This document shows positions 1-62,532 of a stretch of DNA of 64,000 nucleotides, in pieces. The notes beneath the pieces were generated by a model. The model saw only the letters and a list, made by a program, of their open reading frames with translations. It ran no database searches and had not been told where the DNA came from. Origin of the DNA: Auanema rhodensis (taxonomy: Eukaryota; Animalia; Nematoda); NCBI GenBank assembly GCA_964057225.1, contig OZ059899.1:16058001-16122000 (forward strand). Direction: 5' to 3'. The position numbers and the translations under genes were made by a program. How positions within the stretch are numbered: the first letter of the stretch is position 1; the number at the start of each line of letters is the position of its first letter.

Positions 1-115
1 CAGCGCCTTAGACCGCTCGGCCATCTCACCTTGATGTGGCAGTTTCAGTCGTATGTTATATTATAATTTGATCATCGCAGTAGGGTAAAAACAATTTTAG
101 CTACGTTGGAATGTC

Positions 116-121
116 AAAAAA
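116..121 (-). terminator. RNA polymerase III oligo-T terminator (repeated in each intact unit)
   Basis: Minus strand ...CTCATCA-GATA-TTTTTT: T6 (T5 in some units) four bases after the discriminator. Confidence 0.85.
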
Positions 122-125
122 TATC

Positions 126-207
126 TGATGAGAGTGGGATTCGAACCCACGCCTCCGAAGAGACTGGTGCCTAAAACCAGCGCCTTAGACCGCTCGGCCA
201 TCTCACC
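126..207 (-). tRNA. tRNA-Leu-TAG: tRNA-Leu(TAG), representative unit
   Basis: Reverse complement is GGTGAGATGGCCGAGCGGTCTAAGGCGCTGGT-TTTAGGC-ACCAGTCTCTTCGGAGGCGTGGGTTCGAATCCCACTCTCATCA. It folds with a 7-bp acceptor stem (one G.U), D arm GCC/GGC, anticodon stem CTGGT/ACCAG, long variable arm CTC-TTCG-GAG, T arm GTGGG-TTCGAAT-CCCAC and discriminator A. CCA is not encoded. Confidence 0.96.
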
Positions 208-302
208 ATGATGTGACTATTTCAGTCGTATGTTATATTTCAATTTGATCATCGCAATAGGGTAAAAACAATTTTAGCTACGTTGGAATGTCAAAAAATA
301 TC

Positions 303-384
303 TGATGAGAGTGGGATTCGAACCCACGCCTCCGAAGAGACTGGTGCCTTAAACCAGCGCCTTAGACCGCTCGGCCATCTCACC
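303..384 (-). tRNA. tRNA-Leu-AAG: tRNA-Leu(AAG), representative unit (majority type)
   Basis: Same body as 126-207; anticodon loop TTAAGGC (plus strand GCCTTAA). Confidence 0.96.
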
Positions 385-409
385 TTGATGTGGCAGTTTC
401 AGTCGTATG

Positions 410-414
410 TTATA
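410..414 (-). promoter_or_regulatory. TATA-like element at -30..-26 of the tRNA gene (repeated in most units)
   Basis: Plus-strand TTATA reads TATAA on the minus strand, 26-30 nt upstream of tRNA nt 1, where TFIIIB/TBP is expected. Some units have TATAG. Confidence 0.55.
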
Positions 415-2014
415 TTATAATTTGATCATCGCAGTAGGGTAAAAACAATTTTAGCTACGTTGGAATGTCAAAAAATATCTGATGAGAGTGGGATTCGAAC
501 CCACGCCTCCGAAGAGACTGGTGCCTTAAACCAGCGCCTTAGACCGCTCGGCCATCACACCTTGATGTGACTATTTCAGTCGTATGTTATATTTCAATTT
601 GATCATCGCAATAGGGTAAAAACAATTTTAGCTACGTTGGAATGTCAAAAAATATCTGATGAGAGTGGGATTCGAACCCACGCCTCCGAAGAGACTGGTG
701 CCTTAAACCAGCGCCTTAGACCGCTCGGCCATCTCACCTTGATGTGGCATTTTCAGTCGTATGTTATATTTCAATTTGATCTTCGCAGTAGGGTAAAAAC
801 AATTTTAGCTACGTTGGAATGTCAAAAAATATCTGATGAGAGTGGGATTCGAACCCACGCCTCCGAAGAGACTGGTGCCTAAAACCAGCGCCTTAGACCG
901 CTCGGCCATCTCACCTTGATGTGACTATTTCATGTCGTATGTTATATTCGAATTTGATCATCGCAGTAGGGTAAAAACAATTTTAGCTACGTTGGAATGT
1001 CAAAAAATATCTGATGAGAGTGGGATTCGAACCCACGCCTCCGAAGAGACTGGTGCCTAAAACCAGCGCCTTAGACCGCTCGGCCATCTCACCTTGATGT
1101 GACTATTTCAGTCGTATGTTATATTTCAATTTGATCATCGCAATAGGGTAAAAACAATTTTAGCTAAGTTGAAATGTCAAAAAATATCTGATGAGAGTGG
1201 GATTCGAACCCACGCCTCCGAAGAGACTGGTGCCTTAAACCAGCGCCTTAGACCGCTCGGCCATCTCACCTTGATGTGACTATTTCAGTCGTATGTTATA
1301 TTCGAATTTGATTATCGTAGTAGGGTAAAAACAATTTTAGCTACGTTGGAATGTCAAAAAATATCTGATGAGAGTGGGATTCGATCCCACGCCTCCGAAG
1401 AGACTGGTGCCTTAAACCAGCGCCTTAGACCGCTCGGCCATCTCACCTTGATGTGACTATTTCAGTCGTATGTTATATTCGAATTTGATCATCGCAGTAG
1501 GGTAAAAACAATTTTAGCTAAGTTGAAATGTCAAAAAATATCTGATGAGAGTGGGATTCGAACCCACGCCTCCGAAGAGACTGGTGCCTTAAACCAGCGC
1601 CTTAGACCGCTCGGCCATCTCACCTTGATATGACTATTTCAGTCGTATGTTATATTCGAATTTGATCATCGCAGTAGGGTAAAAACAATTTTAGCTACGT
1701 TGGAATGTCAAAAAATATCTGATGAGAGTGGGATTCGAACCCACGCCTCCGAAGAGACTGGTGCCTAAAACCAACGCCTTAGACCGCTCGGCCATCTCAC
1801 CTTGATGTGACTATTTCAGTCGTATGTTATATTTGAATTTGATCATAACAGTAGGGTAAAAACAATTTTAGCTACGTTGGAATGTCAAAAAATATCTGAT
1901 GAGAGTGGGATTCGAACCCACGCCTCCGAAGAGACTGGTGCCTTAAACCAGCGCCTTAGACCGCTCGGCCATCTCACCTTGATGTGGCATTTTCAGTCCT
2001 ATGTTATATTTCAA

Positions 2015-3586
2015 AAAACCTTCTGTTTCGCATGTTTTCTTTTTGTGGAGCTGTTGCATACATGAAAAGTGTTCATTAAAGATGTTAAGTAATCGTTCTA
2101 ACTGATCTTTTGATAATGATTTTCAAATTGCTGAGAGTGTGTGATGGATCAATATTGTAAATGAAATGAAATATTAAATTTTAAATATGCTAGTTTACTG
2201 ACCTTATTAATGCTCTTGTTGTTTGATTTTTGTAGCTACGGCACTTTATGAAAGTGAGTAGTAGCGTTCCTGTTGTCCCCCTGGCCCTGGTATCAGAATC
2301 TCGTCATCTGAATCGGCTGTTGAGCTATAATGAAAATTGATTACAAATCGAGGTATTTGAAACCTATTCCATGTCGTAGTAGTTTCTCTTACGGTTCGTT
2401 TTCGAAAATTGAGAACCAAATCTTCTGTGATCAAACTTTGATCCGTCAGCTGGTCTCAATTGCTCAGCTTGTACATCTCGCACTGTTCTCTCATTTCTTT
2501 TTCGTTCCAGATTTTCCACGATCGCTCTTTTGTTCGTTTCGTTTTCTAACGATATGAAGACAGCTAGCCTGGAACAAAAATATAATATTTTGTTTCTCAA
2601 ACTTAAGAAACCTGTGTTGGCATAGAGCATGCTTAGGGCAATTTCGTTGCGTGCATCCCGGACTGGAGCATACAAGCTCATTATTGGTCTCATTGACACA
2701 TCCCAATCTGGAATAACAATGATAAACTCAAAATAAAAAATCTTAGCTTATGCTCCCGTACTGTCCTTGGTGAAATATATGCCTGCCTTTGCAGCAGGAA
2801 ATACTTCCAAACGCTGAACAGTTTCAAAAAACATGTCCGCATTGCTGGTCCCGACTGGCTCACTCATCCATGATGGATAGCTTGACAACGAATTTTCAAA
2901 AATGAAATCACTCAAACCGAAAAGTTTGAGCTTATTCATTTTTTCAATGCGTGTCATTACTAACCACTCATGGTTTTCAACATGAAAATGAGTGACCAGT
3001 TTGTCGGATTTCTGATGAACGGCTCCAATTCGTTCTTTAATTTCTTCTATAAAAAAATTACTAGTTATTTTCATTATGTTTTGATTACCTTCATGTAGTT
3101 GTAGCATTTTTTCTAGAACTTGATGAGCCGGAATAGGGTGAGGTATTCTAGCGTTCAATTGAGAATTCTTCGACTCCAACAAGCTTGTTGAAAAAAATTG
3201 TTGGCTTTGCCCAGCTCTCAATTTTTGAATCAAACTATTGGTTTGATATAAATCGTCCTTGTTGGTAAGAAGCCTAAATTAAAAAAAAATAAAAGAATTC
3301 AAAAAAAACCAACCATTGTCGAGTTCTTTCTCCACAATTCCTTACAATATCTTGGATTTTCCTTTCATATTCATCACGGTTTTGTGATGATAGAGCCCCT
3401 TTCCTCATGATCGTTCCATATTCAGTCTTAAAACATAAAAATAGTGTTTAAAAACAATATCAAGTATACCTCTTTTTTTCTTCCAAATATTTTATGGAGG
3501 ATGTGTTCCTTTCTCTCAGCATCATCGTCCTTGCCGAATGTGCTTTTGATATTCTCCATTCGGTGCACGGAACATCTTAGCGGTAC
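2015..3586 (-). mobile_element. Truncated duplicate of the MULE (3' part of the transposase only)
   Basis: Nearly identical to 19200-20770 (offset 17185, a handful of SNPs) with the same left junction. It breaks just upstream of the LRCSVH codons, so both catalytic Asp exons are missing. Confidence 0.9.
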
Positions 3587-3599
3587 GGTACGGTACGAG

Positions 3600-6500
3600 T
3601 TCAGTCGTATGTTATATTTCAATTTGATTTTCGCAAAAGGGTAAAAACAATTTTAGCTACGTTGGAATGTCAAAAAATATCTGATGAGAGTGGGATTCGA
3701 ACCCACGCCTCCGAAGAGACTGGTGCCTTAAACCAGCGCCTTAGACCGCTCGGCCATCTCACCTTGATGTGACTATTTCAGTCGTATGTTATATTTCAAT
3801 TTGATCATCGCAATAGGGTAAAAACAATTTTAGCTACGTTGGAATGTCAAAAAATATCTGATGAGAGTGGGATTCGAACCCACGCCTCCGAAGAGACTGG
3901 TGCCTTAAACCAGCGCCTTAGACCGCTCGGCCATCTCACCTTGATGTGACTATTTCAGTCGTATGTTATATTTCAATTTGATCATCGCAATAGGGTAAAA
4001 ACAATTTTAGCTACGTTGGAATGTCAAAAAATATCTGATGAGAGTGGGATTCAAACCCACGCCTCCGAAGAGACTGGTGCCTTAAACCAGCGCCTTAGAC
4101 TGCTCGGCCATCTCACCTTGATGTGACTATTTCAGTCGTATGTTATATTTCAATTTGATCATCGCAGTAGGGTAAAAACAATTTTAGCTACGTTGGAATG
4201 TCAAAAAATATCTGATGAGAGTGGGATTCGATCCCACGCCTCCGAAGAGACTGGTGCCTTAAACCAGCGCCTTAGACCGCTCGGCCATCTCACCTTGATG
4301 TGACTATTTCAGTCGTATGTTATATTTGAATTTGATCATCGCAGTAGGGTAAAAACAATGTTAGCAACGTTGGAATGCCAAAAAATATCTGATGAGAGTG
4401 GGATTCGAACCCACGCCTCCGAAGAGACTGGTGCCTTAAACCAGCGCCTTAGACCGCTCGGCCATCTCACCTTGATGTGACTATTTCAGTCGTATGTTAT
4501 ATTCGAATTTGATCATCGCAGTAGGGTAAAAACAATTTTAGCTACGTTGGAATGTCAAAAAATATCTGATGAGAGTGGGATTCGAACCCACGCCTCCGAA
4601 GAGACTGGTGCCTTAAACCAGCGCCTTAGACCGCTCGGCCATCTCACCTTGATGTGACTATTTCAGTCGTATGTTATATTTCAATTTGATCATCGCAATA
4701 GGGTAAAAACAATTTTAGCTACGTTGGAATGTCAAAAAATATCTGATGAGAGTGGGATTCAAACCCACGCCTCCGAAGAGACTGGTGCCTTAAACCAGCG
4801 CCTTAGACTGCTCGGCCATCTCACCTTGATGTGACTATTTCAGTCGTATGTTATATTTCAATTTGATCATCGCAATAGGGTAAAAACAATTTTAGCTACG
4901 TTGGAATGTCAAAAAATATCTGATGAGAGTGGGATTCGAACCCACGCCTCCGAAGAGACTGGTGCCTTAAACCAGCGCCTTAGACCGCTCGGCCATCTCA
5001 CCTTGATGTGGCAGTTTCAGTCGTATGTTATATTATAATTTGATCATCGCAGTAGGGTAAAAACAATTTTAGCTACGTTGGAATGTCAAAAAACATCTGA
5101 TGAGAGTGGGATTCGAACCCACTCCTCCGAAGAGACTGGTGCCTAAAACCAGCGCCTTAGACCGCTCGGCCATCTCACCATGATGTGACTATTTCAGTCG
5201 TATGTTATATTTCAATTTGATCATCGCAGTAGGGTAAAAACAATTTTAGCTACGTTGGAATGTCAAAAAATATCTGATGAGAGTGGGATTCAAACCCACG
5301 CCTCCGAAGAGACTGGTGCCTTAAACCAGCGCCTTAGACCGCTCGGCCATCTCACCTTGATGTGACTATTTCAGTCGTATGTTATATTTCAATTTGATCA
5401 TCGCAATAGGGTAAAAACAATTTTAGCTACGTTGGAATGTCAAAAAATATCTGATGAGAGTGGGATTCGAACCCACGCCTCCGAAGAGACTGGTGCCTAA
5501 AACCAGCGCCTTAGACCGCTCGGCCATCTCAACTTGATGTGGCATTTTCAGTCGTATGTTATATTTCAATTTGATTATCGCAATAGGGTAAAAACAATTT
5601 TAGCTACGTTGCAATGTCAAAAAATATCTGATGAGAGTGGGATTCGAACCCACGCCTCCGAAGAGACTGGTGCCTTAAACCAGCGCCTTAGACCGCTCGT
5701 CCATCTCACCTTGATGTGACTATTTCAGTCGTATGTTATATTTCAATTTGATCATCGCAATAGGGTAAAAACAATTTTAGCTACGTTGGAATGTCAAAAA
5801 ATATCTGATGAGAGTGGGATTCAAACCCACGCCTCCGAAGAGACTGGTGCCTTAAACCAGCGCCTTAGACTGCTCGGCCATCTCACCTTGATGTGACTAT
5901 TTCAGTCGTATGTTATATTTCAATTTGATCATCGCAATAGGGTAAAAACAATTTTAGCTACGTTGGAATGTCAAAAAATATCTGATGAGAGTGGGATTCG
6001 AACCCACGCCTCCGAAGAGACTGGTGCCTTAAACCAGCGCCTTAGACCGCTCGACCATCTCAGCTTGATGTGACATTTTCAGTCGTATGTTATATTTCAA
6101 TTTGATCATCGCAGTAGGGTAAAAACAATTTTAGCTACGTTGGAATGTCAAAAAATATCTGATGAGAGTGGGATTCGAACCCACGCCTCCGAAGAGACTG
6201 GTGCCTAAAACCAGCGCCTTAGACCGCTCGGCCATCTCACCATGATGTGACTATTTCAGTCGTATGTTATATTTCAATTTGATCATCGCAGTAGGGTAAA
6301 AACAATTTTAGCTACGTTGGAATGTCAAAAAATATCTGATGAGAGTGGGATTCAAACCCACGCCTCCGAAGAGACTGGTGCCTTAAACCAGCGCCTTAGA
6401 CCGCTCGGCCATCTCACCTTGATGTGACTATTTCAGTCGTATGTTATATTTCAATTTGATCATCGCAATAGGGTAAAAACAATTTTAGCTACGTTGGAAT

Positions 6501-9500
6501 GTCAAAAAATATCTGATGAGAGTGGGATTCGAACCCACGCCTCCGAAGAGACTGGTGCCTTAAACCAGCGCCTTAGACCGCTCTGCCATCTCACCTTGAT
6601 GTTGCATTTTCAGTCGTATGTTATATTTCAATTTGATCTTCGCAGTAGGGTAAAAACAATTTTAGCTACGTTGGAATGTCAAAAAATATCTGATGAGAGT
6701 GGGATTCGAACCCACGCCTCCGAAGAGACTGTTGCCTAAAACCAGCGCCTTAGACCGCTCGGCCATCTCACCTTGATGTGACTATTTCAGTCGTATGTTA
6801 TATTCGAATTTGATCATCGCAGTAGGGTAAAAACAATTTTAGCTACGTTGGAATGTCAAAAAATATCTGATGAGAGTGGGATTCGAACCCACGCCTCCGA
6901 AGAGACTGGTGCCTTAAACCAGCGCCTTAGACCGCTCGGCCATCTCACCTTGATGTGACTATTTCAGTCGTATGTTATATTTCAATTTGATCATCGCAAT
7001 AGGGTAAAAACAATTTTAGCTACGTTGGAATGTCAAAAAATATCTGATGAGAGTGGGATTCGAACCCACGCCTCCGAAGAGACTGGTGCCTTAAACCAGC
7101 GCCTTAGACCGCTCGGCCATCTCACCTTGATGTGACTATTTCAGTCGTATGTTATATTCGAATTTGATCATCGCAGTAGGGTAAAAACAATTTTAGCTAA
7201 GTTGGAATGTCAAAAAATATCTGATGAGAGTGGGATTCGAACCCACGCCTCCGAAGAGACTGGTGCCTAAAACCAGCGCCTTAGACCGCTCGGCCATCTC
7301 ACCATGATGTGACTATTTCAGTCGTATGTTATATTTCAATTTGATCATCGCAGTGGGGTAAAAACAATTTTAGCTAAGTTGGAATGTCAAAAAATATCTC
7401 ATGAGAGTGGGATTCGAACCCACGCCTCCGAAGAGACTAGTGCCTAAAACCAGCGCCTTAGACCGCTCGGCCATCTCACCTTGATGTGGCATTTTCAGTC
7501 GTATGTTATATTTCAATTTGATCATCGCAGTAGGGTGAAAACAATTTTAGCTACGTTGGAATGTCAAAAAATATCTGATGAGAGTGGGATTCGAACCCAC
7601 GCCTCCGAAGAGACTGGTGCCTTAAACCAGCGCCTTAGACCGCTCGGCCATCTCACCTTGATGTGACTATTTCAGTCGTATGTTATATTTCAATTTGATC
7701 ATCGCAATAGGGTAAAAACAATTTTAGCTACGTTGGAATGTCAAAAAATATCTGATGAGAGTGGGATTCGAACCCACGCCTCCGAAGAGACTGGTGCCTT
7801 AAACCAGCGCCTTAGACCGCTCGGCCATCTCACCTTGATGTGACTATTTCGGTTGTATGTTATATTTGAATTTGATCATAACAGTAGGGTAAAAACAATT
7901 TTAGCAACGTTGGAATGTCAAAAAATATCTGATGAGAGTGGGATTCGAACCCACGCCTCCGAAGAGACTGGTGCCTTAAACCAGCGCCTTAGACCGCTCG
8001 GCCATCTCACCTTGATGTGACTATTTCAGTCGTATGTTATATTTCAATTTGATCATCGCAATAGGGTAAAAACAATTTTAGCTACGTTGGAATGTCAAAA
8101 AATATCTGATGAGAGTGGGATTCGAACCCACGCCTCCGAAGAGACTGGTGCCTAAAACCAGCGCCTTAGACCGCTCGGCCATCTCACCATGATGTGACTA
8201 TTTCAGTCGTATGTTATATTTCAATTTGATCATCGCAGTAGGGTAAAAACAATTTTAGCTACGTTGGAATGTCAAAAAATATCTGATGAGAGTGGGATTC
8301 AAACCCACGCCTCCGAAGAGACTGGTGCCTTAAACCAGCGCCTTAGACCGCTCGGCCATCTCACCTTGATGTGACTATTTCAGTCGTATGTTATATTTCA
8401 ATTTGATCATCGCAATAGGGTAAAAACAATTTTAGCTACGTTGGAATGTCAAAAAATATCTGATGAGAGTGGGATTCGAACCCACGCCTCCGAAGAGACT
8501 GGTGCCTTAAACCAGCGCCTTAGACCGCTCTGCCATCTCACCTTGATGTTGCATTTTCAGTCGTATGTTATATTTCAATTTGATCTTCGCAGTAGGGTAA
8601 AAACAATTTTAGCTACGTTGGAATGTCAAAAAATATCTGATGAGAGTGGGATTCGAACCCACGCCTCCGAAGAGACTGTTGCCTAAAACCAGCGCCTTAG
8701 ACCGCTCGGCCATCTCACCTTGATGTGACTATTTCAGTCGTATGTTATATTCGAATTTGATCATCGCAGTAGGGTAAAAACAATTTTAGCTACGTTGGAA
8801 TGTCAAAAAATATCTGATGAGAGTGGGATTCGAACCCACGCCTCCGAAGAGACTGGTGCCTTAAACCAGCGCCTTAGACCGCTCGGCCATCTCACCTTGA
8901 TGTGACTATTTCAGTCGTATGTTATATTTCAATTTGATCATCGCAATAGGGTAAAAACAATTTTAGCTACGTTGGAATGTCAAAAAATATCTGATGAGAG
9001 TGGGATTCGAACCCACGCCTCCGAAGAGACTGGTGCCTTAAACCAGCGCCTTAGACCGCTCGGCCATCTCACCTTGATGTGACTATTTCAGTCGTATGTT
9101 ATATTCGAATTTGATCATCGCAGTAGGGTAAAAACAATTTTAGCTAAGTTGGAATGTCAAAAAATATCTGATGAGAGTGGGATTCGAACCCACGCCTCCG
9201 AAGAGACTGGTGCCTAAAACCAGCGCCTTAGACCGCTCGGCCATCTCACCATGATGTGACTATTTCAGTCGTATGTTATATTTCAATTTGATCATCGCAG
9301 TGGGGTAAAAACAATTTTAGCTAAGTTGGAATGTCAAAAAATATCTCATGAGAGTGGGATTCGAACCCACGCCTCCGAAGAGACTAGTGCCTAAAACCAG
9401 CGCCTTAGACCGCTCGGCCATCTCACCTTGATGTGGCATTTTCAGTCGTATGTTATATTTCAATTTGATCATCGCAGTAGGGTGAAAACAATTTTAGCTA

Positions 9501-12500
9501 CGTTGGAATGTCAAAAAATATCTGATGAGAGTGGGATTCGAACCCACGCCTCCGAAGAGACTGGTGCCTTAAACCAGCGCCTTAGACCGCTCGGCCATCT
9601 CACCTTGATGTGACTATTTCGGTTGTATGTTATATTTGAATTTGATCATAACAGTAGGGTAAAAACAATTTTAGCAACGTTGGAATGTCAAAAAATATCT
9701 GATGAGAGTGGGATTCGAACCCACGCCTCCGAAGAGACTGGTGCCTTAAACCAGCGCCTTAGACCGCTCGGCCATCTCACCTTGATGTGACTATTTCAGT
9801 CGTATGTTATATTTCAATTTGATCATCGCAATAGGGTAAAAACAATTTTAGCTACGTTGGAATGTCAAAAAATATCTGATGAGAGTGGGATTCGAACCCA
9901 CGCCTCCGAAGAGACTGGTGCCTAAAACCAGCGCCTTAGACCGCTCGGCCATCTCACCATGATGTGACTATTTCAGTCGTATGTTATATTTCAATTTGAT
10001 CATCGCAGTAGGGTAAAAACAATTTTAGCTACGTTGGAATGTCAAAAAATATCTGATGAGAGTGGGATTCAAACCCACGCCTCCGAAGAGACTGGTGCCT
10101 TAAACCAGCGCCTTAGACCGCTCGGCCATCTCACCTTGATGTGACTATTTCAGTCGTATGTTATATTTCAATTTGATCATCGCAATAGGGTAAAAACAAT
10201 TTTAGCTACGTTGGAATGTCAAAAAATATCTGATGAGAGTGGGATTCGAACCCACGCCTCCGAAGAGACTGGTGCCTTAAACCAGCGCCTTAGACCGCTC
10301 TGCCATCTCACCTTGATGTTGCATTTTCAGTCGTATGTTATATTTCAATTTGATCTTCGCAGTAGGGTAAAAACAATTTTAGCTACGTTGGAATGTCAAA
10401 AAATATCTGATGAGAGTGGGATTCGAACCCACGCCTCCGAAGAGACTGTTGCCTAAAACCAGCGCCTTAGACCGCTCGGCCATCTCACCTTGATGTGACT
10501 ATTTCAGTCGTATGTTATATTCGAATTTGATCATCGCAGTAGGGTAAAAACAATTTTAGCTACGTTGGAATGTCAAAAAATATCTGATGAGAGTGGGATT
10601 CGAACCCACGCCTCCGAAGAGACTGGTGCCTTAAACCAGCGCCTTAGACCGCTCGGCCATCTCACCTTGATGTGACTATTTCAGTCGTATGTTATATTTC
10701 AATTTGATCATCGCAATAGGGTAAAAACAATTTTAGCTACGTTGGAATGTCAAAAAATATCTGATGAGAGTGGGATTCGAACCCACGCCTCCGAAGAGAC
10801 TGGTGCCTTAAACCAGCGCCTTAGACCGCTCGGCCATCTCACCTTGATGTGACTATTTCAGTCGTATGTTATATTCGAATTTGATCATCGCAGTAGGGTA
10901 AAAACAATTTTAGCTAAGTTGGAATGTCAAAAAATATCTGATGAGAGTGGGATTCGAACCCACGCCTCCGAAGAGACTGGTGCCTAAAACCAGCGCCTTA
11001 GACCGCTCGGCCATCTCACCATGATGTGACTATTTCAGTCGTATGTTATATTTCAATTTGATCATCGCAGTGGGGTAAAAACAATTTTAGCTAAGTTGGA
11101 ATGTCAAAAAATATCTCATGAGAGTGGGATTCGAACCCACGCCTCCGAAGAGACTAGTGCCTAAAACCAGCGCCTTAGACCGCTCGGCCATCTCACCTTG
11201 ATGTGGCATTTTCAGTCGTATGTTATATTTCAATTTGATCATCGCAGTAGGGTGAAAACAATTTTAGCTACGTTGGAATGTCAAAAAATATCTGATGAGA
11301 GTGGGATTCGAACCCACGCCTCCGAAGAGACTGGTGCCTTAAACCAGCGCCTTAGACCGCTCGGCCATCTCACCTTGATGTGACTATTTCAGTCGTATGT
11401 TATATTTCAATTTGATCATCGCAATAGGGTAAAAACAATTTTAGCTACGTTGGAATGTCAAAAAATATCTGATGAGAGTGGGATTCGAACCCACGCCTCC
11501 GAAGAGACTGGTGCCTTAAACCAGCGCCTTAGACCGCTCGGCCATCTCACCTTGATGTGACTATTTCGGTTGTATGTTATATTTGAATTTGATCATAACA
11601 GTAGGGTAAAAACAATTTTAGCAACGTTGGAATGTCAAAAAATATCTGATGAGAGTGGGATTCGAACCCACGCCTCCGAAGAGACTGGTGCCTTAAACCA
11701 GCGCCTTAGACCGCTCGGCCATCTCACCTTGATGTGGCATTTTCAGTCGTATGTTATATTTCAATTTGATCATCGCAATAGGGTAAAAACAATTTTAGCT
11801 ACGTTGGAATGTCAAAAAATATCTGATGAGAGTGGGATTCGAACCCACGCCTCCGAAGAGACTGGTGCCTTAAACCAGCGCCTTAGACCGCTCGGCCATC
11901 TCACCTTGATGTGACTATTTCAGTCGTATGTTATATTTCAATTTGATCATCGCAATAGGGTAAAAACAATTTTAGCTACGTTGGAATGTCAAAAAATATC
12001 TGATGAGAGTGGGATTCGAACCCACGCCTCCGAAGAGACTGGTGCCTTAAACCAGCGCCTTAGACTGCTCGGCCATCTCACCTTGATGTGACTATTTCGG
12101 TTGTATGTTATATTTGAATTTGATCATAACAGTAGGGTAAAAACAATTTTAGCAACGTTGGAATGTCAAAAAATATCTGATGAGAGTGGGATTCGAACCC
12201 ACGCCTCCGAAGAGACTGGTGCCTTAAACCAGCGCCTTAGACCGCTCGGCCATCTCACCTTGATGTGACTATTTCAGTCGTATGTTATATTTGAATTTGA
12301 TCATCGCAGTAGGGTAAAAACAATGTTAGCAACGTTGGAATGTCAAAAAATATCTGATGAGAGTGGGATTCGAACCCACGCCTCCGAAGAGACTGGTGCC
12401 TTAAACCAGCGCCTTAGACCGCTCGGCCATCTCACCTTGATGTGACTATTTCAGTCGTATGTTATATTTCAATTTGATCATCGCAATAGGGTAAAAACAA

Positions 12501-46644: not shown

Positions 46645-46657
46645 TGGAGGTTCCACC
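46645..46657 (+). promoter_or_regulatory. Primer-binding site complementary to the tRNA-Gln 3' end
   Basis: TGGAGGTTCCACC is the reverse complement of GGTGGAACCT-CCA, the 3' end of animal tRNA-Gln. Confidence 0.85.
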
Positions 46658-50981: not shown

Positions 50982-51621
50982 CACTATGGAGCTCATTTTA
51001 GTGCAAAAAATTATCTCTATCGTCGTATAGGATTACGGTAGCCTTCTATTTCTATTATATTTCTACTTATTCCTTGTTTTTTGTTGTTTATTCACCTAAT
51101 TTCTCTGTTTCTCATGAATATTTTTCTAATTCATCGTTACTTTTATCTTACAATGTGGAAAAAATAATTATATTTGAAGTTATTTCTGTCGTCGGCTATG
51201 ATAAAGTCGGAATCTTTATCAGTGTTGTCAAAAACTGAATATATGTTTTCTCGAGGAGTATAGAACTTGCCGACTTCCAGCTTCGGCTTCATGTCTGTTT
51301 TCTGCAGTTCTCCTCTTTGAACACTGAGAAGACTTGTACGGCTTCTTGTGCGGCTGCCGACACAAGCGTCACTGCTGGTATCGGACGGGTAAAAATCTGG
51401 GCAAGCCAATGAGAATTTTTTGGCCACCTTTGTAGGACTCTTGGTTTCGAAAAACCGAGAGTGGTGAACTACGTGTGGCCCGTTGACGTAAGGTGCGTAA
51501 GATCGTTTTAGATGTGTGTTAGGAAGAGAGAGAGTTTCAAGAGCAAAAGGACAGGCGTGCTTCGCTGGGCGATGCGGAGGGTATATGAAAGGGATTTTTT
51601 TCCAACAGTCTCTTCGGAGCA
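50982..51621 (-). mobile_element. 640-bp CACTATG fragment, copy 9
   Basis: Duplicate of copy 8 (offset 8728; shares the LKRSY variant). Confidence 0.6.
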
Positions 51622-54600
51622 GCCTCAGACCGCTCGGCCATCTCACCATGATGTGACTATTTCTGTCGTATGTTATATTTAAATTTGATCATAGTAGTAG
51701 GGTAAAAACAATGTTAGCAACGTTGGAATGCCAAAAAATATCTGATGAGAGTGGGATTCGAACCCACGCCTCCGAAGAGACTGGTGCCTTAAACCAGCGC
51801 CTTAGACCGCTCGGCCATCTCACCATGATGTGACTATTTCTGTCGTATGTTATATTTGAATTTGATCTTCGCAGTAGTGTAAAAACAATTCTAGCTACGT
51901 TGGAATATCAAAAATAATCTGATGAGAGTGGGATTCCAACCCACGCCTACGAAGAGACTGGTGACTAAAACCAGCGCCTTAGACCGCCCGGCCATCTTAC
52001 CATGATGTGACTATTTCTGTCGTATGTTATATTTGAATTTCATCATAGTAGTAGGGTAAAAACAATGTTAGCAACGTTGGAATGCCAAAAAATATCTGAT
52101 GAGAGTGGGATTCGAACCCACGCCTCCGAAGAGACTGGTGCCTTAAACCAGCGCCTTAGACCGCTCGGCCATCTCACCATGATGTGACTATTTCTGTCGT
52201 ATGTTATATTTGAATTTGATCATAGCAGTAGGGTAAAAACAATTCTAGCTACGTTGGAATGTCAAAAAATATCTGATGAGAGTGGGATTCGAACCCACGC
52301 CTCCGAAGAGACTGGTGCCTTAAACCAGCGCCTTAGACCGCTCGGCCATCTCACCATGATGTGACTATTTCTGTCGTATGTTATATTTGAATTTGATCAT
52401 AGCAGTAGGGTAAAAACAATTCTAGCTACGTTGGAATGTCAAAAAATATCTGATGAGAGTGGGATTCGAACCCACGCCTCCGAAGAGACTGGTGCCTTAA
52501 ACCAGCGCCTTAGACCGCTCGGCCATCTCACCATGATGTGACTATTTCTGTCGTATGTTATATTTGAATTTGATCATCGCAGTAGGGTAAAAACAATTTT
52601 AGCTAAGTTGGAATGTCAAAAAATATCTGATGAGAGTGGGATTCGAACCCACGCCTACGAAGAGACTGGTGACTAAAACCAGCGCCTTAGACCGCCCGGC
52701 CATCTTACCATGATGTGACTATTTCTGTCGTATGTTATATTTGAATTTCATCATAGTAGTAGGGTAAAAACAATGTTAGCAACGTTGGAATGCCAAAAAA
52801 TATCTGATGAGAGTGGGATTCGAACCCACGCCTCCGAAGAGACTGGTGCCTAAAACCAGCGCCTTAGACCGCTCGGCCGTGTCACCATGATGTGACTACT
52901 TCTGTTGTATGCTATATTCGAATTTGATCATCGCAGTAGGGTAAAAACAATTTTAGCTAAGTTGGAATGTCAAAAAATATCTGATGAGAGTGGGATTCGA
53001 ACCCACGCCTCCGAAGAGACTGGTGCCTTAAACCAGCGCCTTAGACCGCTCGGCCATCTCACCATGATGTGACTATTTCTGTCGTATGTTATATTTGAAT
53101 TTGATCATCGCAGTAGGGTAAAAACAATTTTAGCTAAGTTGGAATGCCAAAAAATATCTGATGAGAGTGGGATTCGAACCCACGCCTCCGAAGAGACTGG
53201 TGCCTTAAACCAGCGCCTTAGACCGCTCGGTCATCTCACCATGATGTGACTATTTCTGTCGTATGTTATATTTAAATTTGATCATAGTAGTAGGGTAAAA
53301 ACAATTTTAGCTAAGTTGGAATGCCAAAAAATATCTGATGAGAGTGGGATTTTAACCCACGCCTCCGAAGAGACTGGTGCCTTAAACCAGCGCCTTAGAC
53401 CGCTCGGCCGTGTCACCATGATGTGACTATTTCTGTCGTATGTTATATTTGAATTTGATCATCGCAGTAGGGTAAAAACAATTCTAGCTACGTTGGAATG
53501 TCAAAAAATATCTGATGAGAGTGGGATTCGAACCCACGCCTCCGAAGAGACTGGTGCCTAAAACCAGCGCCTTAGACCGCCCGGCCATCTCACCATGATG
53601 TGACTATTTCTGTCGTATGTTATATTTGAATTTGATCATCGCAGTAGGGTAAAAACAATGTTAGCAACGTTGGAATGCCAAAAAATATCTGATGAGAGTG
53701 GGATTCGAACCCACGCCTCCGAAGAGACTGGTGCCTTAAACCAGCGCCTTAGACCGCTCGGCCGTGTCACCATGATGTGACTATTTCAGTCGTATGTTAT
53801 ATTTGAATTTGATCATCGCAGTAGGGTAAAAACAATTCTAGCTACGTTGGAATGTCAAAAAATATCTGATGAGAGTGGGATTCGAACCCACGCCTCCGAA
53901 GAGACTGGTGCCTTAAACCAGCGCCTTAGACCGCTCGGCCATCTCACCATGATGTGACTACTTCTGTTGTATGCTATATTCGAATTTGATCATCGCAGTG
54001 GGGTAAAAACAATTCTAGCTACGTTGGAATGTCAAAAAATATCTGATGAGAGTGGGATTCGAACCCACGCCTCCGAAGAGACTGGTGCCTAAAACCAGCG
54101 CCTTAGACCGCTCGGCCGTGTCACCATGATGTGACTATTTCTGTCGTATGTTATATTTGAATTTGATCATCGCAGTAGGGTAAAAACAATTCTAGCTACG
54201 TTGGAATGTCAAAAAATATCTGATGAGAGTGGGATTCGAACCCACGCCTCCGAAGAGACTGGTGCCTTAAACCAGCGCCTTAGACCGCTCGGCCATCTCA
54301 CCATGATGTGACTACTTCTGTTGTATGCTATATTCGAATTTGATCATCGCAGTGGGGTAAAAACAATTCTAGCTACGTTGGAATGTCAAAAAATATCTGA
54401 TGAGAGTGGGATTCGAACCCACGCCTCCGAAGAGACTGGTGCCTAAAACCAGCGCCTTAGACCGCTCGGCCGTGTCACCATGATGTGACTATTTCTGTCG
54501 TATGTTATATTTGAATTTGATCATCGCAGTAGGGTAAAAACAATTCTAGCTACGTTGGAATGTCAAAAAATATCTGATGAGAGTGGGATTCGAACCCACG

Positions 54601-54991
54601 CCTCCGAAGAGACTGGTGCCTTAAACCAGCGCCTTAGACCGCTCGGCCATCTCACCATGATGTGACTACTTCTGTTGTATGCTATATTCGAATTTGATCA
54701 TCGCAGTGGGGTAAAAACAATTCTAGCTACGTTGGAATGTCAAAAAATATCTGATGAGAGTGGGATTCGAACCCACGCCTCCGAAGAGACTGGTGCCTAA
54801 AACCAGCGCCTTAGACCGCTCGGCCGTGTCACCATGATGTGACTATTTCTGTCGTATGTTATATTTGAATTTGATCATCGCAGTAGGGTAAAAACAATTC
54901 TAGCTACGTTGGAATGTCAAAAAATATCTGATGAGAGTGGGATTCGAACCCACGCCTCCGAAGAGACTGGTGCCTTAAACCAGCGCCTTAG

Positions 54992-56947
54992 TGTCACATC
55001 TGCAAGCACATGGTAAACATGTGCGCGCTATTCAAATAGCGGGAGCCTGAACAAGCCCCGCCCACAACATGGGACACACATGGCACTCTTGCTTCTGGCC
55101 TAACCCAGATAGGTTGTCTTATAGCCATGTGAGTCTCATCTCTATATCATCTATATATATACTCTATTTAATACTTTATTATATCTCTTTATATTCTTTC
55201 TTAATGTAATTCTTATATTGTATTTTCTTGTTATCTGATAATGAATCCTTTTCTCTTTGAGTATTTGTCTTAATAAGGAAATCGGAGCGTTCGGGTCTGC
55301 CTACCTAAGGAACAAGGTAGAAGTACATATATCTTCCGACCATGAAAAGACGGGAAGAAACAATATGTAACGTGGAGGTTCCACCTTGCTTACTTTACTG
55401 TTAATTTATTGACAGCAAGTTTACGAGACTTTTGGACTTAATTACCCAACAGTGAGGAGTAACCGAGCCGTGCACCATGATTTCCCCAAAAATTATTTTG
55501 GCTACCACTTCTCCTCCGCTCAACGAAAACTGGGAGGTGTCTGAGACGTTTGGGGAAACTATCAGACAATAGTTTTGACGAGCGTTACCTTTTTGTTATG
55601 CACGCGCGTGCTATTTTGATTCATTACTTTATGATGTGAATGTCCAGTGTGGCAACAGAGCTCACTTTTTAGCTGAGTTGTTTGGAAGCTGGAGGCTGTT
55701 GGGATAATTTTATTTACGATTTTTGATTTTGATTCACATCCAAGGGTTCATCAGGGTTCTACTCCTGTTAACTCTTTTCTTATTAGTTCAGAGATAATAA
55801 GAATATTTAAATTCCTACCCACCCAAGTCCACTCTACGTCTGCCAACGTTTCCTTTTTCCTATATTATTGACAGATTACTGAATTTAAATTCCTATATCA
55901 ATCTTAAATTACCTTCTAAATCTTTTGAAATTAAATTAAAAATTATCTTAATTAAGATTTATTTTGGAATTCTTTCTACAAATCTTAATAAACTTTATAA
56001 AATTGAACTTAATATACGAGATGAGACATTTTTGTTTACTTTAAGCTTACTCACATTCAAATAGTTGGCCCACGCGTACCAGCTGTTCGGCATGTGTAGG
56101 CAATAACAGCTGTTAAAATTCAAAAGTTTTCAAACAGGCTTAAGGCACCATCTGTGATTCCTTATTTGTCTCTAAGCTGACATAAGTGATTATAATATTC
56201 AAATATCACGACAGACGGTCAATGGTTGTTTACCATAAGCGCTAACATCTGGTGTCGTGACACATGGCTGGAGGCGGAGCTTGAAGCTTCAACGATCCTC
56301 CTTCATCAGACGCCATTGTCACAAACGTTTTTACTGGAGTCTAGTTGCTTCCAGTACGCGCTCTTATATTCATCTAACTGTATTCACCAGCCACCCTGTC
56401 GGACTCGGACATCAGCGAGGAAAACAAAGATCAGGAACAAGGATCACCAGAGGTACGCCAAGTTTTTGAATTTAATTCTAAAAACTTAAATACTCCATCC
56501 ACCTACCTCTCTCCTTTTGAATTTTTGAGAGAAGAAGGTGATTCCTCTTCTTCTTCTCATTCTTCTTCTCTAACAATTAGAACGAGAAGTAAAAGCAGAA
56601 AGGCCATCACTGAGGAAACACCTCGGGCACCTACTGAAGTACGAAATAGATCACCAAGTCGGTGGGCCGCTGCTATAACTAAAGCTTTTGAAAGAAAAAT
56701 GACTCCTACCTCTCCATCTCCTAATTCTAATGTTGCTCCACCCTCTAGAAATATGGCAACTATTTTAAATTGCCATCTCTGTCCCAGGTATGACGGCTCT
56801 CGTAGCTTTCGTTCTTTTGTTGAATCTTTAAATAGATTTTTTAATGTTATGAATCTAAGCTTACCTGAGAGACTATTAATTTTGCCTCTTCTTTTGGAAT
56901 CAAATGAAACAGCTCTCTCCTTGTACGGGAAGAAACAATATGTAACG
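54992..56947 (+). mobile_element. Internally deleted LTR retrotransposon, copy 2
   Basis: Same junctions and ORFs as copy 1 at offset 8728 (LTR 54992-55372, PBS 55373-55385). Confidence 0.88.
56525..56924 (+). pseudogene. gag: Truncated gag-like ORF, copy 2
   Basis: Translation identical to that of copy 1. Confidence 0.65.
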
Positions 56948-59355
56948 TTAGACCGCTCGGCCATCTCACCATGATGTGACTACTTCTGTTGTATGCTATA
57001 TTCGAATTTGATCATCGCAGTAGGGTAAAAACAATTTTAGCTAAGTTGGAATGCCAAAAAATATCTGATGAGAGTGGGATTCGAACCCACGCCTCCGAAG
57101 AGACTGGTGCCTAAAACCAGCGCCTTAGACCGCTCGGCCATCTCACCATGATGTGACTACTTCTGTTGTATGCTATATTCGAATTTCATCATCGCAGTAG
57201 GGTAAAAACAATTTTAGCTAAGTTGGAATGCCAAAAAATATCTGATGAGAGTGGGATTCGAACCCACGCCTCCGAAGAGACTGGTGCCTAAAACCAGCGC
57301 CTTAGACCGCTCGGCCATCTCACCATGATGTGACTACTTCTGTTGTATGCTATATTCGAATTTCATCATCGCAGTAGGGTAAAAACAATTCTAGCTACGT
57401 TGGAATGTCAAAAAATATCTGATGAGAGTGGGATTCGAACCCACGCCTCCGAAGAGACTGGTGCCTTAAACCAGCGCCTTAGACCGCTCGGCCATCTCAC
57501 CATGATGTGACTACTTCTGTTGTATGCTATATTCGAATTTGATCATCGCAGTGGGGTAAAAACAATTCTAGCTACGTTGGAATGTCAAAAAATATCTGAT
57601 GAGAGTGGGATTCGAACCCACGCCTCCGAAGAGACTGGTGCCTTAAACCAGCGCCTTAGACCGCTCGGCCATCTCACCATGATGTGACTATTTCTGTCGT
57701 ATGTTATATTTGAATTTGATCATCGCAGTAGGGTAAAAACAATGTTAGCAACGTTGGAATGCCAAAAAATATCTGATGAGAGTGGGATTCGAACCCACGC
57801 CTCCGAAGAGACTGGTGCCTTAAACCAGCGCCTTAGACCGCTCGGCCGTGTCACCATGATGTGACTATTTCAGTCGTATGTTATATTTGAATTTGATCAT
57901 CGCAGTAGGGTAAAAACAATTCTAGCTACGTTGGAATGTCAAAAAATATCTGATGAGAGTGGGATTCGAACCCACGCCTCCGAAGAGACTGGTGCCTAAA
58001 ACCAGCGCCTTAGACCGCTCGGCCATCTCACCATGATGTGACTACTTCTGTTGTATGCTATATTCGAATTTCATCATCGCAGTAGGGTAAAAACAATTTT
58101 AGCTAAGTTGGAATGCCAAAAAATATCTGATGAGAGTGGGATTCGAACCCACGCCTCCGAAGAGACTGTTGCCTAAAACCAGCGCCTTAGACCGCTCGGC
58201 CGTGTCACCATGATGTGACTATTTCTGTCGTATGTTATATTTGAATTTGATCATCGCAGTAGTGTAAAAACAATTCTAGCTACGTTGGAATGTCAAAAAA
58301 TATCTGATGAGAGTGGGATTCGAACCCACGCCTCCGAAGAGACTGGTGCCTTAAACCAGCGCCTTAGACCGCTCGGTCATCTCACCATGATGTGACTATT
58401 TCTGTCGTATGTTATATTTAAATTTGATCATAGTAGTAGGGTAAAAACAATTTTAGCTAAGTTGGAATGCCAAAAAATATCTGATGAGAGTGGGATTTTA
58501 ACCCACGCCTCCGAAGAGACTGGTGCCTTAAACCAGCGCCTTAGACCGCTCGGCCGTGTCACCATGATGTGACTATTTCAGTCGTATGTTATATTTGAAT
58601 TTGATCATCGCAGTAGGGTAAAAACAATTCTAGCTACGTTGGAATGCCAAAAAATATCTGATGAGAGTGGGATTCGAACCCACGCCTCCGAAGAGACTGG
58701 TGCCTTAAACCAGCGCCTTAGACCGCTCGGCCGTGTCACCATGATGTGACTATTTCAGTCGTATGTTATATTTGAATTTGATCATCGCAGTAGGGTAAAT
58801 ACAATTCTAGCTACGTTGGAATGTCAAAAAATATCTGATGAGAGTGGGATTCGAACCCACGCCTCCGAAGAGACTGGTGCCTTAAACCAGCGCCTTAGAC
58901 CGCTCGGCCATCTCACCATGATGTGACTACTTCTGTTGTATGCTATATTCGAATTTGATCATCGCAGTGGGGTAAAAACAATTTTAGCTAAGTTGGAATG
59001 CCAAAAAATATCTGATGAGAGTGGGATTCGAACCCACGCCTCCGAAGAGACTGGTGCCTAAAACCAGCGCCTTAGACCGCTCGGCCATCTCACCATGATG
59101 TGACTACTTCTGTTGTATGCTATATTCGAATTTCATCATCGCAGTAGGGTAAAAACAATTTTAGCTAAGTTGGAATGCCAAAAAATATCTGATGAGAGTG
59201 GGATTCGAACCCACGCCTCCGAAGAGACTGGTGCCTAAAACCAGCGCCTTAGACCGCTCGGCCATCTCACCATGATGTGACTACTTCTGTTTTATGTTCC
59301 AACCCACGCCTCCGAAGAGACTGGTGCTTTTAACCAGCGCCTTAGACCGCTCGGC

Positions 59356-59995
59356 CACTATGGAGCTCATTTTAGTGCAAAAAATTATCTCTATCGTCGT
59401 ATAGGATTACGGTAGCCTTCTATTTCTATTATATTTCTACTTATTCCTTGTTTTTTGTTGTTTATTCACCTAATTTCTCTGTTTCTCATGAATATTTTTC
59501 TAATTCATCGTTACTTTTATCTTACAATATGGAAAAAATAATTATATTTGAAGTTATTTCTGTCGTCGGCTATGATAAAGTCGGAATCTTTATCAGTGTT
59601 GTCAAAAACTGAATATATGTTTTCTCGAGGAGTATAGAACTTGCCGACTTCCAGCTTCGGCTTCATGTCTGTTTTCTGCAGTTCTCTTCTTTGAACACTG
59701 AGAAGACTTGTACGGCTTCTTGTGCGGCTGCCGACACAAGCGTCACTGCTGGTACCGGACGGGTAAAAATCTGGGCAAGCCAATGAGAATTTTTTGGCCA
59801 CCTTTGTAGGACTCTTGGTTTCGAAAAACCGAGAGTGGTGAGCTACGTGTGGCCCGTTGACGTAAGGTGCGTAAGATTGTTTTAGATGTGTGTTAGGAAG
59901 AGAGAGAGTTTCAAGAGCAAAAGGACAGGCGTGCTTCGCTGGGCGACGCGGAGGGTATATGAAAGGGATTTTTTTCCAACAGTCTCTTCGGAGCA
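59356..59995 (-). mobile_element. 640-bp CACTATG fragment, copy 10
   Basis: Same junctions; shares the PSGT and QRRE variants with copy 11. Confidence 0.6.
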
Positions 59996-61167
59996 GCCTC
60001 AGACCGCTCGGCCATCTCACCATGATGTGACTATTTCTGTCGTATGTTATATTTAAATTTGATCATAGTAGTAGGGTAAAAACAATGTTAGCAACGTTGG
60101 AATGCCAAAAAATATCTGATGAGAGTGGAATTCGAACCCACGCCTACGAAGAGACTGGTGACTAAAACCAGCGCCTTAGACCGCCCGGCCATCTTACCAT
60201 GATGTGACTATTTCTGTCGTATGTTATATTTGAATTTGATCATCGCAGTAGGGTAAAAACAATGTTAGCAACGTTGGAATGCCAAAAAATATCTGATGAG
60301 AGTGGGATTCGAACCCACGCCTCCGAAGAGACTGGTGCCTTAAACCAGCGCCTTAGACCGCTCGGCCGTGTCACCATGATGTGACTATTTCAGTCGTATG
60401 TTATATTTGAATTTGATCATCGCAGTAGGGTAAAAACAATTCTAGCTACGTTGGAATGCCAAAAAATATCTGATGAGAGTGGGATTCGAACCCACGCCTC
60501 CGAAGAGACTGGTGCCTTAAACCAGCGCCTTAGACCGCTCGGCCGTGTCACCATGATGTGACTATTTCAGTCGTATGTTATATTTGAATTTGATCATCGC
60601 AGTAGGGTAAAAACAATTCTAGCTACGTTGGAATGTCAAAAAATATCTGATGAGAGTGGGATTCGAACCCACGCCTCCGAAGAGACTGGTGCCTTAAACC
60701 AGCGCCTTAGACCGCTCGGCCATCTCACCATGATGTGACTACTTCTGTTGTATGCTATATTCGAATTTGATCATCGCAGTGGGGTAAAAACAATTTTAGC
60801 TAAGTTGGAATGCCAAAAAATATCTGATGAGAGTGGGATTCGAACCCACGCCTCCGAAGAGACTGGTGCCTAAAACCAGCGCCTTAGACCGCTCGGCCAT
60901 CTCACCATGATGTGACTACTTCTGTTGTATGCTATATTCGAATTTCATCATCGCAGTAGGGTAAAAACAATTTTAGCTAAGTTGGAATGCCAAAAAATAT
61001 CTGATGAGAGTGGGATTCGAACCCACGCCTCCGAAGAGACTGGTGCCTAAAACCAGCGCCTTAGACCGCTCGGCCATCTCACCATGATGTGACTACTTCT
61101 GTTTTATGTTCCAACCCACGCCTCCGAAGAGACTGGTGCTTTTAACCAGCGCCTTAGACCGCTCGGC

Positions 61168-61807
61168 CACTATGGAGCTCATTTTAGTGCAAAAAATTAT
61201 CTCTATCGTCGTATAGGATTACGGTAGCCTTCTATTTCTATTATATTTCTACTTATTCCTTGTTTTTTGTTGTTTATTCACCTAATTTCTCTGTTTCTCA
61301 TGAATATTTTTCTAATTCATCGTTACTTTTATCTTACAATATGGAAAAAATAATTATATTTGAAGTTATTTCTGTCGTCGGCTATGATAAAGTCGGAATC
61401 TTTATCAGTGTTGTCAAAAACTGAATATATGTTTTCTCGAGGAGTATAGAACTTGCCGACTTCCAGCTTCGGCTTCATGTCTGTTTTCTGCAGTTCTCTT
61501 CTTTGAACACTGAGAAGACTTGTACGGCTTCTTGTGCGGCTGCCGACACAAGCGTCACTGCTGGTACCGGACGGGTAAAAATCTGGGCAAGCCAATGAGA
61601 ATTTTTTGGCCACCTTTGTAGGACTCTTGGTTTCGAAAAACCGAGAGTGGTGAACTACGTGTGGCCCGTTGACGTAAGGTGCGTAAGATTGTTTTAGATG
61701 TGTGTTAGGAAGAGAGAGAGTTTCAAGGGCAAAAGGACAGGCGTGCTTCGCTGGGCGATGCGGAGGGTATATGAAAGGGATTTTTTTCCAACAGTCTCTT
61801 CGGAGCA
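61168..61807 (-). mobile_element. 640-bp CACTATG fragment, copy 11
   Basis: 1812 bp after copy 10. Confidence 0.6.
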
Positions 61808-62532
61808 GCCTCAGACCGCTCGGCCATCTCACCATGATGTGACTATTTCTGTCGTATGTTATATTCAAATTTGATCATAGTAGTAGGGTAAAAACAATGT
61901 TAGCAACGTTGGAATGCCAAAAAATATCTGATGAGAGTGGGATTCGAACCCACGCCTCCGAAGAGACTGGTGCCTTAAACCAGCGCCTTAGACCGCTCGG
62001 CCATCTCACCATGATGTGACTATTTCTGTCGTATGTTATATTTGAATTTGATCATCGCAGTAGTGTAAAAACAATTCTAGCTACGTTGGAATATCAAAAA
62101 TAATCTGATGAGAGTGGGATTCCAACCCACGCCTACGAAGAGACTGGTGACTAAAACCAGCGCCTTAGACCGCCCGGCCATCTTACCATGATGTGACTAT
62201 TTCTGTCGTATGTTATATTTGAATTTCATCATAGTAGTAGGGTAAAAACAATGTTAGCAACGTTGGAATGCCAAAAAATATCTGATGAGAGTGGGATTCG
62301 AACCCACGCCTCCGAAGAGACTGGTGCCTTAAACCAGCGCCTTAGACCGCTCGGCCATCTCACCATGATGTGACTATTTCTGTCGTATGTTATATTTGAA
62401 TTTGATCATCGCAGTAGGGTAAAAACAATTCTAGCTACGTTGGAATGTCAAAAAATATCTGATGAGAGTGGGATTCGAACCCACGCCTCCGAAGAGACTG
62501 GTGCCTTAAACCAGCGCCTTAGACCGCTCGGC

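Follow-up and report, generated by a model that had tools for sequence, protein, structure and literature searches.

The window, that is, the whole 64,000-nt stretch of DNA analysed here, is occupied over positions 1-62532 by tRNA-Leu genes arranged head-to-tail on the minus strand with a 177-bp period. A unit scan gave 253 matches, 249 of them full length, and ARAGORN found 247 tRNA-Leu genes from 125 to 62365, all on the minus strand, with which Rfam RF00005 was concordant over 19-35 kb. The spacing between units is 177 bp in 227 cases and 178 bp in 10. Array DNA totals 46,157 bp (~261 unit equivalents) and inserts 16,375 bp, and the tRNA density over the array is 26-43%. The roughly 250-260 head-to-tail 177-bp units over at least 62 kb described in an earlier, sequence-only reading are therefore confirmed. 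As in a tandem tRNA gene array, each unit contains a full tRNA gene; it is a single gene, the spacer is free of short tandem repeats (STR), and the A box, B box and terminator are present in most units. Open reading frames running across the units were rejected as by-products of the repeat. The features are listed in Table 1.

Table 1. Features of the tRNA-Leu array and of its inserts (window positions; MULE, Mutator transposon)
Feature	Position	Strand	Details
Left domain	1..19195	-	99 full-length genes, 24% TAG; 7-, 9-, 10-, 11-, 17- and 21-unit higher-order repeats; continues past the left edge of the window
Representative tRNA-Leu(AAG) gene	303..384	-	82 nt, long variable arm; oligo-T terminator of at least 5 T starts 4-5 nt downstream; spacer 95 bp
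Truncated MULE copy	2011..3599	-	99.6% identical to left 1,576 bp of the remnant; left junction shared; short repeated filler rejoins spacer
MULE remnant, transposase gene with introns	19196..23053	-	tblastn of best homologue E 8e-48; one terminus at ~23056, in tRNA T arm; opposite end lost
Middle domain	23054..27011	-	21 full-length genes, 76% TAG-type including one TAA
638-bp insert, unclassified, first of 11 copies	27012..27649	.	copies 97.5-100% identical
638-bp insert, other copies	starts 29709, 31875, 32886, 34519, 37039, 39559, 42256, 50984, 59358, 61170		
Right domain	27650..62532	-	129 full-length genes, ~40% TAG, 60 damaged; insert-bearing higher-order repeats of 1.8-2.7 kb
Exact tandem duplication	40202..57711	.	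period 8,728 bp; 0 mismatches over 8,782 bp
Internally deleted LTR retrotransposon	46264..48219	+	381-bp LTR, primer-binding site 46645, start of a probable gag frame, last 23 bp of LTR
Second deleted LTR copy, identical	54992..56947	+	product of the 8,728-bp duplication
Left end of large element	62533..64000	.	inserted between tRNA positions 10 and 9; only this terminus in window

The array is divided into three regional sub-families, which correspond to the left, middle and right domains. Unit identity is 96.4% within the left domain and 95.4% within the right one, against 94.2% between the two, and multi-unit repeats of 2, 7, 9, 10, 11, 17 and 21 units are found, with an alternating dimer at 45061-46263 in the right domain. 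The regional sub-families, higher-order repeats and multi-kb duplications of the sequence-only reading thus hold up on measurement, the last in the form of the exact 8,728-bp duplication. There are 111 distinct monomers, in ordered and nested patterns. In its length, sub-families and multi-unit repeats the array behaves as a satellite; it departs from a satellite with a non-coding monomer and no gene-shaped constraint in that diversity falls over the cloverleaf.

Four kinds of insert were located (the MULE remnant, the 638-bp element in 11 copies, the deleted LTR element in two, and the element starting at 62533), which bears out the earlier mention of trapped transposons; together they interrupt the 177-bp phase at least 15 times. 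The best homologue of the MULE remnant comes from Auanema sp. JU1783 and its Atlas matches are MULE families, while a Pfam search of the MULE exons, exon by exon, gave no match. The joint of the truncated MULE copy to the spacer is found in run X5, and X1 has it as a loose end. The 638-bp insert is bordered by two tRNA-derived stretches, a 19-bp repeat of positions 8-26 and a short piece in inverted orientation, and is now built into the higher-order unit of the right domain; its reading frame has no relative in Pfam, in the Atlas or in a protein search, the latter a weak blank as it was limited to similar lengths. The deleted LTR element has a 4-bp target duplication at tRNA positions 20-23. 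Three of the four element ends lie in tRNA positions 8-23, yet p is 0.08 when any 16-bp window is allowed, and an insertion hot spot was not retained.

Among the 253 matches, 161 carry the anticodon AAG (~64%) and 90 carry TAG (~36%), and every full-length copy retains a leucine anticodon, which is AAG, TAG or, in one copy, TAA. What is new here is that two leucine anticodons sit on a single tRNA body and are mixed within one array. The two are interleaved and have been recombined onto all spacer backgrounds: all four gametes occur between the anticodon site and each common site, with r2 of at most 0.2, and in 120 of 153 site pairs overall. Recombination between units is pervasive, and the units are mosaics. 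An ancestral AAG-TAG dimer is ruled out by the weak association of either anticodon with any spacer type and by runs of up to 18 units. The TAG share varies from 15 to 65% per 20 units (anticodon Fst 0.09); several spacer sites are equally weakly regional (Fst 0.04-0.08), and balancing selection on the anticodon is not shown by this mixing. A single anticodon change that preserves the amino acid is the commonest nuclear tRNA remolding (PMC4981973, PMC7919458); however, the known cases differ between orthologous loci, whereas this array holds both states in hundreds of recombining tandem copies.

Such an array permits selection on a multicopy RNA gene to be measured inside a satellite-like repeat, because gene and spacer share their history and their diversity is directly comparable. 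Nucleotide diversity (pi) was 0.020 in the tRNA, wobble position excluded, and 0.074 in the spacer (permutation p 0.0002, optimistic like the other p values given here because block duplications make variants non-independent). As in a tandem tRNA array, the gene is thus more conserved than the spacer, being ~3.7x less variable. Variants at a frequency of 5% or more were found at 4 of 81 tRNA sites and 21 of 95 spacer sites (p 0.001), while rare alleles were similar in frequency (29 in the 81 tRNA sites, 42 in the 95 spacer sites); a deficit in the tRNA is seen for common alleles (p 0.03). The oligo-T terminator is retained in 249/249 full-length copies, with pi 0.021. Within the gene, pi was 0.051 in the A box, 0.023 in the B box and 0.013 at the remaining tRNA sites (the latter versus spacer, p 0.0001). 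Conservation is highest outside the boxes, and this points to a constraint on the tRNA product, or to conversion from other leucine genes, rather than to a TFIIIC platform.

The earlier statement that most units have an intact cloverleaf proved generous. It stands for 148 of the 249 full-length copies (59%), 132 of them perfect and 16 with tolerated changes, which have no stem or invariant-base damage; the other 101 (41%) have a potentially damaging change, either a broken stem pair or an altered invariant base. A single allele that breaks both U8 and an acceptor-stem pair is present in 42/238 units, and damaged alleles have been carried along by recent duplications. The array shows neither the strand bias typical of transcription-associated mutation nor an excess near the gene, in a comparison of low power, and none of the sequencing runs listed as sharing window sequence is on record as RNA, ChIP or MNase. 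Over its first 46 nt the gene matches, without a difference, single-copy tRNA-Leu(AAG) genes dispersed over seven other contigs, where the flanks are unrelated, and a scan of metagenomes returned dispersed single genes only, with no second array.

Taking these observations together, we consider it probable (roughly 0.6) that this is an over-amplified tandem array of complete Pol III tRNA-Leu units, part of them transcribed, whose pooled output is under purifying selection while selection on each copy is weak. Each unit, with its internal A and B boxes and oligo-T terminator, would be a complete Pol III gene, multiplied by unequal exchange and replication slippage. Purifying selection on the summed output of the transcribed fraction would, in the long term, keep damaging variants from becoming common, while each copy by itself would be under too little selection to prevent damaged alleles and pieces of transposon from spreading with recent duplications. 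Either A or T would be tolerated at the wobble base, since each yields a leucine tRNA, and recombination between units would keep the two versions mixed, so that one array would supply two isoacceptors. The array resembles a set of working genes amplified in excess; it evolves like satellite DNA and does not look like a centromere. The share of potentially damaged copies and the frequency of the U8/acceptor-stem allele weigh against this explanation, as do the absence of RNA among the listed runs, the absence of a strand bias and the possibility that conversion by other leucine tRNA genes produced the same diversity pattern.

The genome context matches the tRNA gene figures of an A. rhodense preprint, which speaks for the over-amplified array: 19,554 tRNA genes, of which 215 alone are called pseudogenes, with mention of tandem blocks of several tRNA loci (bioRxiv 10.64898/2026.08.27.747507). 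That work, of August 2026, probably concerns the same genome, and its report of a genome-wide tRNA expansion, in outline only, limits the surprise; its main text describes neither this array nor its unit, anticodon mix or evolution. The germline-restricted blocks of A. rhodense always have a non-coding RNA density below 20% per 10 kb (bioRxiv 10.64898/2026.08.27.747507), and the higher tRNA density here means that the array may not be one of these eliminated blocks. If its copies are active, the array shows how this worm holds ~30x the tRNA genes of C. elegans, with two anticodons in one array.

The literature on tRNA-derived satellites and large animal tRNA arrays yielded nothing close. The Entamoeba arrays are also made of intact head-to-tail tRNA genes far beyond translational need, for which structural roles are proposed and unproven, but a unit there can contain as many as five different genes, separated by STR spacers, and the units do not vary within an isolate and include no clear pseudogenes (PMC2652664). 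In contrast, the array in the window is heterogeneous, with its damaged copies, higher-order repeats and transposons, and has one gene per unit, no STR and no telomeric context.

An unlikely alternative is that the array is a silent, neutral satellite whose tRNA part looks conserved, and carries both anticodons, solely through repeated conversion by the genome's numerous other leucine tRNA genes, with which it has the body but not the spacer in common. Rare tRNA variants do arise near the spacer rate, inserts and damaged alleles amplify freely, tRNA genes are known to convert one another (PMC4981973), and weak surveillance has been proposed for eliminated DNA (bioRxiv 10.64898/2026.08.27.747507). 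However, the terminators lie outside the tRNA body and are kept in all full-length copies, and conversion tracts limited to 82 bp would need to outpace local homogenization. If the copies were silent, the array would be a snapshot of a satellite forming out of a gene. The earlier suggestion of a satellite born from a live tRNA gene survives as to its mode of evolution, which fits in the higher-order repeats, the mosaic units and the amplified damaged alleles.

It seems rather improbable that the array persists because it forms a dense TFIIIC platform loading condensin and cohesin, or a boundary or pairing landmark, with tRNA output incidental. At C. elegans tRNA genes, the binding of condensin and cohesin requires TFIIIC in a way that does not depend on Pol III (PMC13142402), the copy number is far above the C. 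elegans total of 615 tRNA genes (PMC13010820), and the A. rhodense preprint speculates on repeat blocks as pairing centres (bioRxiv 10.64898/2026.08.27.747507). A boundary or extra-TFIIIC-type platform would have its boxes preferentially conserved; here, the remaining tRNA sites are better conserved than the A and B boxes, contrary to expectation for a platform that binds protein, and the 177-bp phase is repeatedly broken by inserts. Given the TFIIIC-dependent loading in C. elegans, a side effect of the array on condensin loading or chromatin is nevertheless possible and plausible.

Equally doubtful is an extension of the over-amplified array into a germline tRNA factory, where a single recombining satellite would give two leucine isoacceptors, selection would hold the wobble A/T ratio and turnover would tune anticodon supply, the dense Pol III sites also offering several unrelated mobile elements a favoured landing zone at the A-box/D-loop. 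It is very unlikely that assembly error has exaggerated the length of a real array or created the exact 8.7-kb duplication: the duplicated 8,782 bp are free of mismatches, but the 111 monomers are nested and ordered, 48-78% of the words of 27000-30400 are present in sequencing runs of three studies, and the junction of the MULE copy with the array spacer is present in runs from two studies.

Rhabditid nematodes are holocentric and would not be expected to have a localized centromeric satellite. A centromere-like or chromosome-end satellite with a nucleosome-positioning 177-bp unit, as the sequence-only reading had proposed among structural elements, is hardly credible: human alpha satellite and Arabidopsis CEN178 resemble the array in monomer length, regional sub-families and higher-order repeats, but here the monomer is a gene with a conserved cloverleaf in a holocentric clade, conservation tracks the tRNA and not a box in the spacer, and the TFIIIC boxes vary more than other tRNA sites. 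As to a chromosome-end domain, no telomeric repeat is found within the window, and the A. rhodense preprint reports telomere addition at break sites (bioRxiv 10.64898/2026.08.27.747507), which makes a telomere substitute unnecessary.

The 177-bp head-to-tail repeat spans the window from base 1 to 62532, where ARAGORN called 247 tRNA-Leu genes, every one on the minus strand; the tRNA fold is supported by Rfam in the part of the array that was tested. A direct scan of the window gave 253 tRNA matches, 249 of them full length, spaced at 177 bp in 227 cases and at 178 bp in 10, in agreement with the 250-260 units estimated in the sequence-only reading. In each unit an 82-nt gene, whose variable arm is long, is joined to a 95-bp spacer, and at least five consecutive T stand shortly downstream of the gene. 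Array DNA amounts to 46,157 bp and inserts to 16,375 bp, and a chance product is not a candidate. The claim that most units keep an intact cloverleaf holds in part, as strict scoring of the full-length copies gave 132 perfect and 16 tolerated genes but 101 damaged ones. One allele, present in 42 of 238 aligned units, breaks both U8 and an acceptor-stem pair.

The regional sub-families, higher-order repeats and multi-kb duplications described earlier were all recovered. Spacer variants differ among the three insert-separated domains (Fst up to 0.66), and unit identity is 96.4% within the left domain and 95.4% within the right, versus 94.2% between them. Exact repeats are offset by 2, 7, 9, 10, 11, 17 and 21 units, and positions 40202-57711 are, as assembled, an exact tandem duplication with a period of 8,728 bp. 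All four combinations are found for 120 of the 153 site pairs formed by common variants, and a 638-bp insert has been absorbed into the higher-order unit of the right domain (11 copies). These results show that the array evolves as a satellite does, although its monomer is not the non-coding one of a satellite. Runs from three studies contain 48-78% of the words of 27000-30400, and the Mutator-type (MULE) insert is covered by contigs of three DNA runs, several of them free of differences. Two runs from different studies contain the junction at which the truncated MULE copy passes into array spacer.

Diversity is 0.020 in the tRNA (wobble base excluded) and 0.074 in the spacer, with a permutation p of 0.0002 that is optimistic because block duplications make variants non-independent; the direction is nevertheless consistent, and the gap holds among 111 distinct monomers, within GC sites and within AT sites. 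Rare alleles per site are about equally frequent in tRNA and spacer, whereas the tRNA has fewer common alleles (at least 5%), with 4 against 21 in the spacer. From this anatomy and diversity we infer transcription and selection, and give a probability of roughly 0.6 to amplified complete Pol III units under selection on the pooled tRNA product. Unequal exchange and slippage would amplify blocks of such units, and selection on the pool would keep damaging variants rare over long times; it would be weak per single copy, so that damaged alleles and transposon scraps could ride recent duplications. The main rival holds that the satellite is silent and that conversion from other leucine genes keeps renewing its tRNA part; it invokes a known process between tRNA genes (PMC4981973) and is unlikely by comparison.

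A chromatin role through TFIIIC and SMC complexes, for which work in C. elegans provides a mechanism (PMC13142402), appears more doubtful still. It does not match the conservation pattern, since the least variable gene sites lie outside the boxes (0.013, versus 0.051 in the A box and 0.023 in the B box), and a pure TFIIIC platform does not fit this. A centromere-like role, with unit length as the single point in its favour, is very improbable in a holocentric clade such as that of Auanema, and the suggestion of a structural chromosomal element is thus left unsupported.

Two main anticodons share one tRNA body, AAG in 161 of the 253 matches and TAG in 90; TAA, likewise leucine, occurs in one full-length copy, and the sole non-leucine anticodon is confined to truncated fragments beside the 638-bp insert. 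AAG and TAG units are interleaved along the whole array (15-65% TAG per 20 units) and no common spacer background lacks either anticodon (r2 at most 0.2); the two forms have therefore been shuffled by exchange between units. The same observations rule out two separate lineages, and the interleaving and shared backgrounds rule out a fixed AAG-TAG dimer as the basis of the array. In all three domains the wobble base, alone among the tRNA positions, is polymorphic with common variants, as would follow if the A and T states both yield usable leucine tRNA; the anticodon is not read by leucyl-tRNA synthetase (PMC13010820). In a strict two-unit repeat, at 45061-46263 and 53789-54991, intact AAG genes take turns with damaged TAG genes in which U8 and the acceptor pair are broken.

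The A. rhodense germline genome measures 181 Mb, of which 61% is eliminated from the soma, and has 19,554 tRNA genes alongside just 215 pseudogenes, with several tRNA loci arranged in tandem blocks (10.64898/2026.08.27.747507); the array is probably among those counted there. Eliminated blocks always have an ncRNA density below 20% per 10 kb (10.64898/2026.08.27.747507), against a tRNA density of 26-43% here, a weak hint that the array is not one of them. The array belongs to a known class, tandem tRNA gene arrays, those of Entamoeba being closest in kind. Its distinctive feature is two isoacceptors interleaved on one recombining monomer, of which our literature search found no published description. 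The first 46 nt of the array tRNA match dispersed genes on AT-rich metagenome contigs. At two loci from other organisms (L001 1489-1732 and L005 306-549), the tRNA-Leu(AAG) that matches is 2 nt shorter in its variable arm and stands beside a tRNA-Asn gene instead of in an array.

The trapped transposons of the sequence-only reading proved to be a MULE remnant with a truncated copy and two deleted LTR elements, all within the array. Auanema sp. JU1783 supplies the best homologue of the MULE gene (32% identity), which suggests Auanema as the host genus, and the fit to the preprint cited above points to A. rhodense.

Domains and inserted elements of the array (window positions)
Feature	Positions	Remarks
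Left, middle and right domains	1-19195; 23054-27011; 27650-62532	
Mutator (MULE) remnant	19196-23053	best homologue aligned over several exons; Atlas (protein reference) placement among MULE transposases
Truncated MULE copy	2011-3599	left junction same as in the 19196-23053 remnant
Internally deleted LTR elements, identical	46264-48219 and 54992-56947	4-bp target duplication
638-bp insert	11 copies, right domain	unclassified
Further element	begins at 62533	

The LTR at 46264-46660 starts with TG and ends with CG instead of CA, and the primer-binding site of its element is presumably complementary to the 3' end of tRNA-Gln. Three unrelated inserts (27011/27012, 46260-46263 and 62532/62533) each have one end at tRNA positions 8-23, in the A-box/D-loop, the 638-bp insert and the last element breaking the tRNA within 2 bp of each other; this clustering is no more than suggestive, as the corrected p is 0.08. 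Junctions 3582-3599 and 30330-30346 carry short templated fillers, one a repeated 5-mer and one a stretch of the tRNA variable arm in inverted orientation; such fillers are typical of polymerase-theta end joining.

The 638-bp insert is bordered by a 19-bp repeat and may represent the 3' end of a non-LTR element that was truncated. Most copies keep a 158-codon open frame (29871-30344, minus strand) oriented as the tRNA, for which Pfam, Atlas and a protein search limited to proteins of similar length gave no relative. A low-complexity 52-bp match (81%), probably due to chance, exists between the AT-rich subterminal part of the MULE (22804-22886) and the left-hand end of the element starting at 62533 (62747-62798). 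The terminus of this large element carries 28-30-bp and 55-bp tandem repeats, at 62573-62686 and 63186-63402.
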